From assembly GCF_000400465.1 (NCBI RefSeq), contig NW_008806293.1:122601-154600 (forward strand): a stretch of 32,000 nucleotides of DNA. The letters run 5' to 3'. The translations under genes were made by a program, and so were the position numbers. Shown one piece after another: positions 1 through 24,306 of this stretch. Numbering within the stretch: the first letter of the stretch is position 1; each line of letters starts with the position of its first letter. The stretch comes from Wallemia ichthyophaga EXF-994 (Eukaryota > Fungi > Basidiomycota). A model generated the notes under the pieces. That model ran no database searches, had not been told where the DNA came from, and worked only from the letters and a program-made list of their open reading frames with translations.

Positions 1-1227
1 GGGTCGCTTTTCAATGACAAAACCAAAAGCTGGAATGTGGCAAACCTGCCGTCGTATCTCACCGAAATCCTTAAAGAAGCTGGTGTCGGTGCACAGCTAC
101 CTGGAGTCAACACACCGTACTTATACTTTGGTGCATGGCGAGCAACTTTCGCGTGGCACGTCGAGGACATGGATCTATACAGTATAAATTATATTCATTT
201 CGGTGCACCTAAATTCTGGTACACGATTCCGCAGAAGCAGAAATGGAAATTCGAGAGACTGATGGCAGGTCTGTTCCCTGGGGAGTCTAAGCAATGTCCG
301 GAATGGCTGCGCCATAAATCGTATCTCGCTTCGCCACACGTGTTAGCGTCACAAAACATCAAGCCGTCAGTGCTAGTGCAAAAGCAGAACGAGTTTGTGA
401 TTACATTCCCACATGGCTACCACTCGGGTTTCAATATGGGCTTTAACTGCGCAGAGTCTGTCAATTTCGCTACTGAAGGATGGACCAAGTATGGAAGGAA
501 GGCGCGTGCATGTACCTGTGTTGGCGACAGTGTGAAGATAGACGTAGATCAGCTGCTCGAGCGGATCGAGTATAGGAAGAGGGAGATGGAAGCTGAGAAG
601 AAGGGGGTGGTGATGAAGATGTCTTTGGATGAATATCTACAGTCGAAGCGCGTCAAAGAGACGGCTGATGAACAGATATCCCATATAAAGATACTTGACT
701 ACCTCGTACCTACATTCGCACCGCCGCATGATCAGCAGATTGCGTGGATGAAGTGGGGCGCTACGCAGCCAATTGAGGTGCAGCATGTGATCATCCAAGT
801 TCCGTGGATGCAGGAATGTGTGAAGAATACGCTGAAATCGACGAATGAGAAGAAAGATCAGGCACAGAAGCAGGCACAGACAAAAAAGCAAGAGGAAGTG
901 GCGCAAGAGGAGACGAATTCTCAGCAGCAGCAGCAGCAAACAAACCCAAATATTAACCATTCATTCGCACAGTCATCTGACACCTCCCTTATGCCATCTT
1001 ACAACTCATCATTACCATCATACCAAGCACATCAGACACATCAGGGACTACCAAATCACTACAATCACATATCATCATTGGCTACCTCACAGCAGGCTCA
1101 GCAGCATTCAACAGCAACGCAAGCACAAGTAGCACCAGCACAAGCACCATCATCAGCACACCCATTAGCACAATCACATTTAGCAGCATCCCAAACACAT
1201 TCGTCGCATCTTCCTGGAGGTATTTGA
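1..1227 (+). CDS. JmjC-domain histone demethylase, KDM4/JMJD2/Rph1 family (5' truncated by window edge)
   Basis: Frame is open from base 1 (GSLFNDKTKSWNVANLP). It carries the KDM4 signature YFGAWRATFAWHVEDMDLYSINYIHFGAPKFWY and FPHGYHSGFNMGFNCAESVNFA, followed by a Q/H/S-rich low-complexity tail. Confidence 0.93.
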   Translation, partial: GSLFNDKTKSWNVANLPSYLTEILKEAGVGAQLPGVNTPYLYFGAWRATFAWHVEDMDLYSINYIHFGAPKFWYTIPQKQKWKFERLMAGLFPGESKQCPEWLRHKSYLASPHVLASQNIKPSVLVQKQNEFVITFPHGYHSGFNMGFNCAESVNFATEGWTKYGRKARACTCVGDSVKIDVDQLLERIEYRKREMEAEKKGVVMKMSLDEYLQSKRVKETADEQISHIKILDYLVPTFAPPHDQQIAWMKWGATQPIEVQHVIIQVPWMQECVKNTLKSTNEKKDQAQKQAQTKKQEEVAQEETNSQQQQQQTNPNINHSFAQSSDTSLMPSYNSSLPSYQAHQTHQGLPNHYNHISSLATSQQAQQHSTATQAQVAPAQAPSSAHPLAQSHLAASQTHSSHLPGGI

Positions 1228-2767: not shown

Positions 2768-5076
2768 ATGACTTCACTGGGTTGGAATCTTGCATTCCCT
2801 AAAATCCCTAAAGTTGCGAAATTCCTGCAGCCTCTGTCAAATTGGCTTGTGTTCCTCATCGCTGGTCTCTCTATTGGTCTGCTTAGCGGTGTTCTCTCCA
2901 TTCTTTCCGTTTGGCTCGCGAATCTCAAGTCTGGGCGATGCGTAGACAATCTATCAACACTCAAGACTACCTGCGTTGATTGGAGGGAATGGTCTGATTG
3001 GTCCATTCTCAACTACTTCATTTACATACTTTTCTCTATCTTTTTCGCTTTCGTAGCTGCTTTCGCCGTGCACAGACTAAGCCAACAGGCTTCTGGTAGC
3101 GGTATAAGTGAAATCAAGTGCATTATTGCTGGTGTTGACTATCCCGGCTATCTTCACTGGCCGGTGCTCGCTGTGAAGGCGTGTACTTTGGTGGGTAGCT
3201 GGGTGTCTCAGTTAACCTTATCACTTATTACATTCCTCTCTACAGCCACTCGCCATCGCTTGCGGCCTGTCCATCGGCAAAGAGGGTCCCTCAGTCCACG
3301 TTGCCTGCTGCATCGCACATCTCCAAGCCTCTCTCTTCCCCTATTTCCGCAAAAGCACCGCCAAGATGCGCGAGATTCTCGTCGCTGCCAGTGCGGCTGG
3401 TGTTGCGTGTGCATTCGGTAGTCCAATCGGCGGCGTCATGTTCTCCATCGAGGAGATGACACATACACACACAACCAAGATGATCTGGCGCAGTTTCTTC
3501 TGTGCACTCGCTGCCACTGCTATGCTCTCCGCCCTCAATCCTTTCCACACAGGTAAACTCGTTCTTTTTCAAGTATCGCACGACACCAGTTGGCACTTTT
3601 TCGAGATTGTCTACTTTATAGTGCTCGGTGTGTTTGGGGTGGGTGATGGGTTATGTTGGGTCGTTTAGCATACGCTGATTTTCTTACTTCTTCTCGACAT
3701 TCCCTCTCCAGGGTCTCTTCGGGTCTGTTGTCATCAAGCTCAATCTGGCATATACGGAGGTACGGCGCCGTCACCTGCTTCGCTATCCTGTCAGTGAGGC
3801 AGTTATACTAGCGCTAGTGAGTGGGGTGCTCAGCTACCCGAACCCGCTCCTCCGCATCGACATGACGGAGGGGCTAGCGATGTTATTGCGGGAGTGCAGT
3901 CCTGGCAATAACAGCGATAACCACATTGAAGATTACGGGATGTGCGATGCATCACAAGCATGGACGACTATCCACCGCACACTGTTGGCTACAGTGATAC
4001 GAACGGTGCTCCTGATTATCACATATGGGTGCGGGGTACCCGCGGGTTTATTTGTGCCGTCGCTAGCAGCTGGAGCCACTTTCGGTCGACTGGTGGGCAC
4101 TGTGAGCGCGATGGTGCATGCTCGTTACGCCCACATGCCCTTCTTCGCTGAGTGCCACGCGTCTGCGTCCCAAGCGCCGTGCATCTCACCGCCTACTTAC
4201 GCTCTACTCGGTGCTGCCGCGGCGCTTAGTGGTGTACTGCGAATCTGGGTAACTGTCCCCATTATCATCTTCGAGCTTACAGGCGCACTAGGCCATATTC
4301 TACCCACTATGATCGTCCTAATCACTACAAAAGGGGTTTCGGACTGGTTAAGCGGAGGAGAGGGCATGGGTGGGCACGCTGAGCAGGCTATACGGCGCAG
4401 TAAGATACCCGTGTTGACGAGAACGGATGGCGAAGGTGAAGGGGATGGTGAGGGTGAGGGTGTGCACGTCGCACTAGCCATGACGCCGCTCGCTCAGCTC
4501 GTCGTGCTGCGCGAACACATGCAGGTAGGCGACGTAGACAACGTCTTGCAAAGCAAGCACAGCGGATATCCCGTCGTGCGGTCTGTGGATGGGGATGGAA
4601 TGCAGCTCGTTGGCTACGCAGATGCTCAAACCCTCGCTAAACGCCTCGCGCAACTCGATCGGCTGTCTCAGTGGGCGTGGGTGAGTTTCAGCACTTTCGG
4701 TGGTGAGCAGACCATCTTTGATGTGGATGTGGATGCAGGTGATAGCGATAGTGATAGTGATGGTGGTGGTGATGGTGTAGACACTCCCACACGCACTCCC
4801 ACCGCTATCAACCTCAGCGACACACTCACGGAAACGCCCATCACCATCGCCCCCTCGACACCCCTACACGTCGCAATGAAGCTGTTTAAGAGGCTGGGGC
4901 CGCGCGTGATGCTCGTCGTGCGTCTTGGCGCGCTGGAGGGTTTGGTGGGAGTGGCGGATGTGCTGAGGGAGCGAGACAGCCGGGCCAGCAGGGACAGCAG
5001 GGACAGCAGGAGCAACACTCGCAGCACGATATGGATCCAACTAAGGGACTATATAACGACAAAGATAAATATATAA
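2768..5076 (+). CDS. CLC-family chloride channel/H+ exchanger with C-terminal CBS domains (~726 aa; introns 3191-3245, 3639-3711)
   Basis: Motifs GSGISE, GKEGP (after splicing), FSIEE, GLFVP and IIFELTG, plus a CBS pair (SGYPVV..; LFKRLGPRVMLV). Both introns are phase 0 and join three ORF-track fragments. Confidence 0.92.
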
Positions 5077-12696: not shown

Positions 12697-12800
12697 GGGT
12701 ATTTAAATAAAATAGATAATCGTTTCCTTCTCTCTTTTCTACCATGTGAAAACAAGTACATAAAAATACATGAATATAACTTAGTGTCATCTCTGACATC

Positions 12801-22751: not shown

Positions 22752-23296
22752 TCAACTAATGTAAACTAATGTATCTATAATCATCCTCCATACTCTATTG
22801 TACTCTGCGTGGGGCTCTGCCGCCATTATCTCGTCCACCGCAGTGCTGAGATTGCAGGGGTGAATGTAGTAGCAGGTAAGGCGGGAAAGTGGGTGGTCAG
22901 TGATGGAAATATACCCGCTGTGTTCTGTGTGCTTGAGTATGCCTTGAGCGATGAGTGTATCGAGTGATCGCAGTGGCTGGCTGTCTATGTACCCATTGAA
23001 GTAGAGCACTGGCACGTTGTATGTTTTCGAGTGAAATATATCCCAAACAACGCTGATTAAAGCTGTGCTGGTGCTTTCGCTAGTTGCTGCATCATCCACC
23101 TCACTAACCCCATTAACCTCGCCCTCAAACTCATCCTCAATCACGTTTCTGCTGTGCGTATTTCCACATGGATAGAACGAGCGTCGACGGAGCCCAGACT
23201 GCTTCACCCACTTTGACTGCGATTCTTCCGTAAGCCTCAATTGATTTAATTCCCCTTTCTGCCCACCTCGCTCCCGATTTCTTCAAAGTCCTCCAT
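22752..23296 (-). CDS. ATG10: Autophagy E2-like conjugating enzyme Atg10 (predicted intron 23217-23266)
   Basis: WDIFHSKTYNVPVLYFNGY and ITDHP..YYIHPC (catalytic Cys). The 10-codon first exon MEDFEEIGSE is joined by a 50-nt GTGGGC..CTTAC..CGCAG intron. Confidence 0.85.
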
Positions 23297-24306
23297 GGCG
23301 CTCAAAGCAGAGAGGATTCTAAACTGGCTCAGGCCGCTGATACACTCTACACAACTCAACAGACCTTTCTTCGTTGGCCTTACTGGCGTGCAAGGTGAAT
23401 TTGACGCTCTTTATATCCTCCCACATGACTCAACTGGTGCACACCGCAGGCTCTGGCAAGTCGACTATTGTCAATGAGCTTACTGAGGAACTGGAGAGGA
23501 GTGGTCTGCGAACTGTGCATTTCAGTCTCGACGATCTTTACCTCACCCACCGCGAGCAGCTCGAACTCTCCGCGAAACACCCCGCCAACAAGCTCTACAA
23601 ACATAGGGGACTTTCTGGAACACATGATATGGTGCTCGCGAAAGACATCTTCCAGCAGCTACGCGAGAGCTGGAATGCCCCTGCGCACTCTCACATCGAT
23701 ATACCAGTGTACGACAAGTCCCTGCATAGCGGCCAGGGCGATCGCAAAGCGAAGGGTGAATGGACAAGTATCGATCTACAACCCAGCAACCCGATCAGAG
23801 TGGTCATTTTTGAAGGCTGGTCTGTAGGTTTCAGACCACTCGAAGCTGCTGTCTTGTCTGCTCAGCATAAATCTGCTACTCACTCTGAACCCTCCCTCAC
23901 AAACCAACTCGCTGAACATAGTCTGCAGGATGTGCTCGATATCAATAGCGCACTCCGTGACTACGACACCTTCTTCTCCGGCCCTCAGTTTTTCGATGGT
24001 CTCGTGTACCTCCAAACACTGGAGCTGGGGTATGTTTACGACTGGAGACAGCAACAGGAACAGGGCTTGAGAGATGCAAATAAGCCTCATCAATCTGAAG
24101 AGGGCATCATCAACTTTGTGAAAAATTACATGATTGTGAGTAGGCTTTTTGACATGTGATGAAGCTACTGACAGAGTTTATATCAGGCATATGAGCTTTA
24201 TCTGCCTCAACTCACTCAAGGATTCTTTGGCAGCCAAAATAAAGGTAGACAGCTCACACTTACCCTCAACAAACAGCGTGAAATGATGGGTAGCCAGGTA
24301 ATTTAG
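23295..24306 (+). CDS. P-loop kinase, Tda10/YGR205W (glycerate/uridine-kinase-like) family (introns 23395-23448, 24136-24186)
   Basis: Walker A GVQG|SGKST is formed by splicing. Also SLDDLYL, RGLSGTHD, IPVYDKSL..GQGDR, VIFEGWSVGF, VYDWRQQQE and FVKNYMI|AYELY. Confidence 0.88.

Follow-up and report, generated by a model that had tools for sequence, protein, structure and literature searches.

The start codons of two genes on opposite strands, ATG10 and a P-loop kinase gene, very probably share a single CATG in the genome of Wallemia ichthyophaga EXF-994. The junction lies in a stretch of 32,000 nucleotides (contig NW_008806293.1, positions 122,601 through 154,600; herein the window), to which coordinates refer unless a relative is named. 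We consider it highly likely that the two genes form a genuine head-to-head pair that evolution has retained in a strongly compacted genome, and that both start in a CCATGG palindrome, act as independent units, and tolerate their overlap as a by-product of compaction. W. ichthyophaga is a halophilic basidiomycete with a 9.6-Mb genome described as “unusually compact”; coding sequence (CDS) makes up 73.6% of it, and introns average 61 bp in length and 2.41 per gene (PMC3849046). From the totals given in that source we calculate a mean CDS-to-CDS spacer of ∼370 bp. Annotation coordinates were mapped via scaffold KE007243.1 (EXF-994), to which window positions 12752 through 32000 correspond with 0 mismatches in 19,249 nt. 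The junction was compared between the window and four Wallemia-like lineages (L009, L001, L011, and L003), using public contigs from metagenomes and Logan assemblies; start-codon spacings in these relatives were measured from anchored coordinates.

Window positions 23285 through 23305 read AAAGTCCTCCATGGCGCTCAA. The CATG (23294 through 23297) sits within the palindrome CCATGG (23293 through 23298), which holds the kinase ATG at 23295-23297 on the plus strand and the Atg10 ATG at 23296-23294 on the minus strand; these start codons have 2 nt in common and an identical −2 to +4 context. The kinase ATG, the only one in its exon, opens MALKAERILNWLRPLIHSTQLNRPFFVGLTGVQG; 48 nt upstream the frame is closed by a TAA. 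The Atg10 ATG opens MEDFEEIGSE, with an in-frame TAA at −117 and no ATG between. Across the junction the GC content is ∼0.50, and the AT-rich dip of neighboring spacers is absent; an adjacent head-to-head spacer of 291 bp has a GC content of 0.38. A CATG by itself proves little, because a C preceding ATG is common. What goes beyond chance is that the antisense ATG is, on homology, the predicted start of a second real gene and that related genomes keep the layout. No other initiation codons are as well supported as these two ATGs; the CDSs are thus predicted to overlap by 2 nt in antisense, with zero intergenic DNA.

A preliminary description of this DNA had proposed the CATG palindrome as the start codon of both genes, and every coordinate in it proved correct. 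The Atg10 frame, as it had stated, has no upstream ATG before the TAA at 23413-23411, which is the stop at −117. The 50-nt GT..CTTAC..CAG intron that it placed in phase with the Atg10 open reading frame (ORF) does restore the frame (23266 through 23217), and its claim that no intergenic DNA separates the genes agrees with the −2 nt between the CDSs and the GC content without a dip.

The kinase gene is modeled with three exons on the plus strand. Exon 1 (23295 through 23394; 100 nt), assigned by homology and omitted by the reference annotation, encodes MALKAERILNWLRPLIHSTQLNRPFFVGLTGVQ(G), which comprises the β1 strand and the first half of the Walker A motif. Intron 1 (23395 through 23449; 55 nt, GTGAAT...CAG) holds the annotated start ATG (23425-23427). 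Exon 2 (23450 through 24135) opens with the rest of the P-loop (SGKST); intron 2 (24136 through 24186; 51 nt, GTGAGT...CTGAC...CAG) follows, and exon 3 (24187 through 24306, stop codon included) completes a full spliced product of 301 amino acids. The predicted N terminus of this protein is (M)ALKAERILNWLR; exon 1 encodes MALKAERILNWLRPLIHSTQLNRPFFVGLTGVQGSGK. Among structures in the Protein Data Bank (PDB), the 301-residue kinase matches, along almost its entire length, the D-glycerate 3-kinases 6ckg (E = 1.1e-38, query residues 22 through 299), 7xpc (1.5e-34), and 1odf (yeast YGR205W/TDA10; 5.7e-31), and the alignments of these relatives begin at query residues 21 through 23. Homologs number 146 at E ≤ 1e-10 under varying names (D-glycerate 3-kinase, TDA10, uridine/cytidine kinase); Pfam returns weak, generic P-loop matches only. 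From its sequence the product is a P-loop kinase of the D-glycerate-3-kinase/TDA10 family, with a putative substrate assignment.

The first exon is tied to the family by several features. In the kinase alignment (A1), the 34 residues from 23295 through 23394 match the N termini of 13 fungal homologs, and two of the proteins compared, P0008 and P0010, align with the window kinase residue for residue from the first Met (MDVKVAAIEKWL.. versus MALKAERILNWL..). Exon 1 supplies the family-conserved block “RPFxxGLxGVQG”, which corresponds to the β1 strand and the first Walker A glycine; A1 shows almost no variation at P24, G31, and Q33 and none at G34, G36, and K37. Only with exon 1 is a complete Walker A motif, GxxGxGK[ST], found after the β1 strand (FFVGLTGVQGSGKST); a 276-residue model that omits the exon fails to provide it. 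The relatives L001, L009, and L003 have the same kinase exon 1, followed at the same codon by a GT..AG intron of 47, 48, and 79 nt, respectively. None of these three introns contains an ATG, and all encounter stops when read through.

On the minus strand, the ATG10 model consists of exon 1 (23267 through 23296; 30 nt, encoding MEDFEEIGSE with the family-conserved F4), supported by homology and conservation; intron 1 (23217 through 23266; 50 nt, GTGGGC...CTTAC...CAG), the position of which is conserved in five lineages; and exon 2 (22752 through 23216, with the stop codon at 22752-22754), which is defined by its ORF, Pfam, and alignment and carries the Autophagy_act_C domain with the HPC catalytic motif. 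The spliced product of 164 amino acids is 100% identical to the NCBI entry [quoted passage not shown]. Pfam PF03987 (Autophagy_act_C) matches residues 25 through 159 with 81.8 bits versus a gathering cut-off of 24.4, and the HPC motif (H129-P130-C131) is invariant across the 69 sequences of the Atg10 family alignment (A3). An AF2 model with a pLDDT (predicted local distance difference test) score of 78.7 has the autophagic E2 fold of Atg3/Atg10. Foldseek searches with this model recover Atg3 structures (8e-5 to 6e-3) and Atg10 4ebr_A (E = 0.025, prob 0.97), a result by which, as fold search alone, Atg10 and Atg3 are not separable; a PDB sequence search gives a weak Atg3 match only. The protein is small (164 amino acids) and lacks the flexible and handle regions of Atg3. 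We assign it as Atg10, the E2-like enzyme for Atg12, and from its family predict that it would form a thioester with Atg12 and transfer it to Atg5. Residues 39 through 58 are predicted to be disordered and are acidic.

Where Atg10 begins can be judged from its short first exon. The first ATG of exon 2 lies only at residue 142, and therefore an upstream exon is needed. In the family alignment the column of F4, which is encoded by exon 1, holds Phe in 56 of 69 sequences, and that of W13 holds Trp in 56 of 69. The conserved Phe is preceded by a median of 7 residues in homologs versus 3 in the Wallemia protein; the position of F4 and the few residues before it therefore put the ATG where the family expects a start. 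The structural model has a short helix at residues 3 through 8, with moderate confidence. In the five lineages exon 1 reads MEDFEEIGSE, MDDFEEIASE, MDDFEEIKSQ, MNDFCEIAAE, and MFKDWNEISTN; the first four follow the pattern M[END]DF[EC]EI.., and MFKDWNEISTN is the fifth. In the same lineage order, the intron that follows at the same position measures 50, 48, 46, 42, and 63 nt, lengths that differ modulo 3, as those of a real intron would. Between the window and L001, nucleotide identity reaches 87% in Atg10 exon 1, the top value of the junction, compared with 74 to 77% in the kinase exons and 61 to 66% in the three introns. By our own reading of the sequences, the substitutions in exon 1 relative to L001 fall mostly at third codon positions. 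Separately, the segment of residues 4 through 13 (23287 through 23208, minus strand, across the intron) corresponds to a much shortened N-terminal helix, with a Phe-Trp gap of 8 residues versus ∼15 to 25 in most of the 69 homologs.

The preliminary description had also pointed to synteny in related genomes as a check, and the head-to-head layout is indeed retained in the four Wallemia-like lineages, with spacings of −2 to +10 nt. Atg10 identity to the window is 77, 67, 54, and 48% in these relatives, all of which carry the kinase and ATG10 head to head. The start codons are spaced by −2 nt in the window and by −2 nt in L009 (also L006 and L007), where the CATG is again shared; the spacing is +10 nt in L001, +7 nt in L011, and +9 nt in L003. 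In L001 (∼3725-3745, minus strand), a 12-nt in-frame indel (CATcaagcgtatCATG) lies between the MDDFEE start and the kinase ATG; the first in-frame Atg10 ATG (MIRL-MDDFEE) shares its CATG with the kinase ATG and, if translation began there, would extend Atg10 by MIRL. Near-zero spacing occurs in all of the lineages and is therefore an old feature of the group. Exact sharing of the CATG is one of several states that are interchanged by small indels. In the tremellomycete Naganishia the kinase has other neighbors and does not adjoin Atg10; the synteny is therefore not ancient.

Several observations weigh against a shared start and have to be set beside this evidence. The kinase ATG has a poor base at −3 (T), and the Atg10 donor GTGGGC and branch site CTTAC are not the commonest fungal forms. 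For both genes, the protein cluster members are annotation-derived or are unspliced ORF calls on Logan contigs, with no spliced 301-residue kinase among them. ATGs are present upstream of the Atg10 start in relatives, at −8 (out of frame) and −27 (in frame) in L009 and at −12 (in frame) in L001. We considered the zones free of upstream ATGs in the window (127 nt for the kinase, 130 nt for Atg10) as evidence of leaders and rejected them, each being expected at 12 to 14% of positions by chance. Finally, the EXF-994 annotation (J056_002402) places the kinase at 23425 through 24306, with 276 amino acids and a distance of 128 bp from ATG10. The same 276-residue kinase (P0125) is found in the other annotated W. 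ichthyophaga strains and in UniRef.

The last of these points carries an explanation of its own, namely that the annotation is right, that the kinase is translated from the ATG at 23425 as MTQLVHTAGSGKST... (276 amino acids; N-terminal peptide MTQLVHTAGSGK), and that 23297 through 23424 is a small bidirectional promoter without any overlap of genes. This model is the deposited version in EXF-994 and in all annotated strains, and its ATG, inside intron 1, is in frame with kinase exon 2; a minor 276-residue isoform is moreover conceivable, as intron retention is the most frequent mode of alternative splicing reported in the species (PMC3849046). Its product, however, has nine intron-derived residues (MTQLVHTAG) in place of the 34 true ones, and so lacks the β1 strand and first Walker A glycine that are nearly invariant in the 13 fungal homologs and present in solved D-glycerate 3-kinases. 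The supposed spacer encodes the 34-residue peptide that aligns with homolog N termini (residue for residue in P0008 and P0010) and has a coding-like GC content (∼0.50). The intronic ATG is missing from L001, L009, and L003, and reading through their introns runs into stops. We regard this explanation as very improbable. The preliminary description had named a later kinase ATG as the observation that would count against the shared palindrome; the reference annotation does start at 23425, and we judge that start wrong on homology and conservation and the 128-bp gap false.

The 276-residue model is most likely an artifact of an ab initio predictor unable to place overlapping genes when they lie on opposite strands. 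GeneMark-ES traces one path along the sequence and is not known to output such genes; with ATG10 already holding 23296, the kinase start would have been pushed downstream. This is the program with which EXF-994 genes were predicted ab initio (PMC3849046). The annotations of 21 strains were made with MAKER, with the reference proteome as evidence (PMC6738226), which is why the 276-residue model recurs in the strains; built in this way, the strain models are dependent on the reference and lend it no independent support.

The Atg10 start invites a different objection. Translation might begin not at 23296 but in an upstream coding exon antisense to the kinase or at a non-AUG codon (TTG 23240), the shared CATG then being coincidental. 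The Pfam model aligns with Atg10 only from profile position 42, many Atg10 homologs have 200 to 220 amino acids, and in L001 and L009 the Atg10 frame is open upstream to further in-frame ATGs. Yet F4 and W13 already supply the Phe and Trp conserved at the N terminus of the family, and the ATG is conserved at the homologous position in five lineages. In the window and L003 the upstream frame closes, without an ATG, at −117 and −36, respectively; the extensions that would lie upstream in L001 and L009 show no sequence conservation; and TTG 23240 lies inside an intron that varies in length and phase among lineages. On this evidence a start elsewhere is very improbable indeed. The upstream ATGs of L009 and L001 hint at either very short leaders or tolerated N-terminal extensions. 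In L009 (∼485-515, minus strand) the ATG at −27 would add MRSTLADAV, giving a CDS-CDS overlap of 29 nt, and on the kinase side L003 has an in-frame upstream ATG at −57; such possible extensions thus vary from lineage to lineage.

Database proteins from this region need some care. The 162-residue Atg10 cluster member P0131 is an unspliced ORF call with a TTG start. Gene calls at L001 3728-4264 and L011 132-638 read through the Atg10 intron (48 and 42 nt, respectively; in each a multiple of 3 and stop-free), and the resulting proteins, P0002 and P0139, contain a spurious insert of 16 or 14 residues. Database proteins of the L001 and L011 relatives are therefore not to be taken at face value.

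Returning to a start of both genes in CCATGG, we consider the gene structure of the pair, as read from the sequence, likely to be correct with good confidence. With zero spacer, each core promoter and 5′ untranslated region (UTR) must lie within the transcribed region of the partner, in an exon or the first intron. The preliminary description had put promoters and 5′ UTRs inside the partner's coding sequence; location within the partner's transcribed region, in an exon or the first intron, follows from the geometry. The transcriptional interference that it also suggested is speculation. From the same geometry, the DNA on which RNA polymerase II (Pol II) assembles for one gene would be transcribed, and would largely be coding sequence, for the other. 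Transcription of the kinase would begin to the left of 23295 (within Atg10 exon 1, intron 1, or the early part of exon 2) and that of Atg10 to the right of 23296 (within exon 1 or intron 1 of the kinase). With both start codons in use, the mRNAs overlap by at least 4 nt; complementarity would extend across the two 5′ leaders and the CATG, a short interval in which polymerases would converge. We envisage two independent housekeeping units, probably weakly expressed from leaders shorter than ∼130 nt, with no dedicated regulatory switch, and an overlap that may have arisen via small deletions in a spacer of ∼7 to 10 nt during genome compaction.

Kinase intron 1 holds candidate Atg10 promoter elements (23410 through 23432), which we give as a lead only: a TATAAA at 23415-23410 on the minus strand, ∼115 to 120 nt upstream of the Atg10 ATG, and a TGACTCA of AP-1/Gcn4 type at 23426-23432, the two together spanning ∼115 to 135 nt upstream of that ATG. 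A run of CG(T/C)T(A/C)TTTAT is common to the window, L001, and the start of the L011 intron and is absent from the GC-rich L009. The idea that these are conserved promoter elements was rejected: the first ∼22 nt and a TTTATAT run are common to the window, L001, and L011, but the intron overall has 62% identity and L009 is without a TATA.

The same elements enter into the proposal that the overlap is a selected regulatory device, in which convergent initiation couples the expression of ATG10 with that of the kinase or lets only one of the two be expressed at a time, starvation or salt stress being possible settings. Consistent with it are the TATAAA and TGACTCA upstream of Atg10 and the spacing of ≤10 nt, kept in five lineages despite Atg10 identities of 42 to 77% among themselves; in yeast, Pol II molecules on opposite strands are reported to be unable to pass each other (PMC3504299). 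Set against this, the exact spacing drifts (−2, +7, +9, and +10), L009 has not kept the candidate motifs, and conservation of kinase intron 1 does not exceed that of other introns (62% versus 61 to 66%). The synteny is absent in Naganishia, the two genes have no known functional link, and a simple lack of space (mean spacer ∼370 bp) explains the retention. We rate selection for such a device as very improbable. A slim chance attaches to the idea that the retained zero spacer is functional in that the embedded promoters fire convergently, kinase and ATG10 transcription are mutually exclusive, and the first introns (50 and 55 nt, within ∼100 nt of the start) house core-promoter elements such as the TATAAA. 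If this is true, an extreme halophile would possess a compact interference switch through which an autophagy E2 is tied to carbon metabolism.

An independent pair with a tolerated overlap can be compared with three kinds of known arrangement. Divergent pairs with a bidirectional promoter are exemplified by GAL1-GAL10 in Saccharomyces cerevisiae and by mammalian bidirectional promoters of less than 1 kb. As in those pairs, two coding genes are transcribed apart from one short region. Unlike them, with their non-coding promoter spacer (∼300 bp in the neighboring pairs of the window), ATG10 and the kinase have a spacer of −2 nt; there can therefore be no shared intergenic promoter and the transcripts must overlap, which sets the pair apart from the classical bidirectional kind. 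Coupling at the divergent GAL locus is among the subjects covered in PMC10205079. Head-to-head cis-natural antisense pairs are included in a catalog for Neurospora crassa (PMC3951366), and transcriptional interference or collision is the usual proposed outcome of 5′-overlapping mRNAs (PMC3504299). The likeness to such pairs lies in the complementary 5′ ends of divergent mRNAs, which we infer here from gene structure. Typical cis-antisense pairs overlap in UTRs only, in contrast to the overlap of ATG10 and the kinase, which reaches the initiation codons with 2 nt of CDS-CDS overlap.

Williams and colleagues reportedly described, in PNAS in 2005, transcription units that overlap in eukaryotic genomes shaped by compaction, such as those of microsporidia and nucleomorphs. 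There, as here, intergenic loss drives regulatory and UTR sequence into neighboring genes, and predictors that forbid opposite-strand overlap mis-model the result. Unlike microsporidia, Wallemia is free-living and has a normal intron density (2.41 per gene); in microsporidia, moreover, most overlaps concern 3′ ends or read-through, and a shared start codon is atypical. Overlapping transcripts also confound the annotation of compact fungal genomes (bioRxiv 10.1101/2023.04.26.537486). The present case is unusual in degree: its start codons overlap by 2 nt within a palindrome, the host is a free-living basidiomycete rich in introns, and the arrangement is conserved across lineages.

Crowding extends to one flank of the pair. 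Only 44 bp (22708 through 22751) separate the ATG10 stop (22752-22754, minus strand) from the stop of a convergent gene for a product of 127 amino acids (22324 through 22707, plus strand), and the 3′ UTRs and terminators of these two genes must therefore overlap or intrude. A comparable tight tail-to-tail neighbor was called in L001, L006 through L009, and L011. On the other flank, 1.6 kb (24307 through 25895; GC 0.34 to 0.42), ∼4 times the mean genome spacer, run from the kinase stop to an RSN1/PHM7-like gene of the calcium-permeable stress-gated channel family (25896 through 28696). This stretch has short ORFs only and no annotated gene; a long promoter is one possible reading, an unannotated or non-coding gene another. 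In L004, a short-chain dehydrogenase/reductase (adh_short) gene lies ∼400 bp downstream of the kinase instead. Rfam and tRNA scans of the whole window gave no match.

The ATG10/kinase pair is real and conserved, yet a fairly ordinary extreme of gene crowding that calls for no change to current concepts. For the annotation of the species, J056_002402 and its strain copies should receive a corrected N terminus, with 301 rather than 276 amino acids. Because the annotation method cannot place overlapping genes, other tight Wallemia pairs are probably truncated likewise, and gene counts and N termini may carry a systematic bias. The junction offers a natural case of two eukaryotic core promoters within each other's transcribed and coding DNA, usable for the study of minimal fungal leader length and of how Pol II handles convergent initiation over ∼100 to 250 bp. 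Within the spectrum of spacer loss under compaction in a free-living basidiomycete, it represents one extreme.

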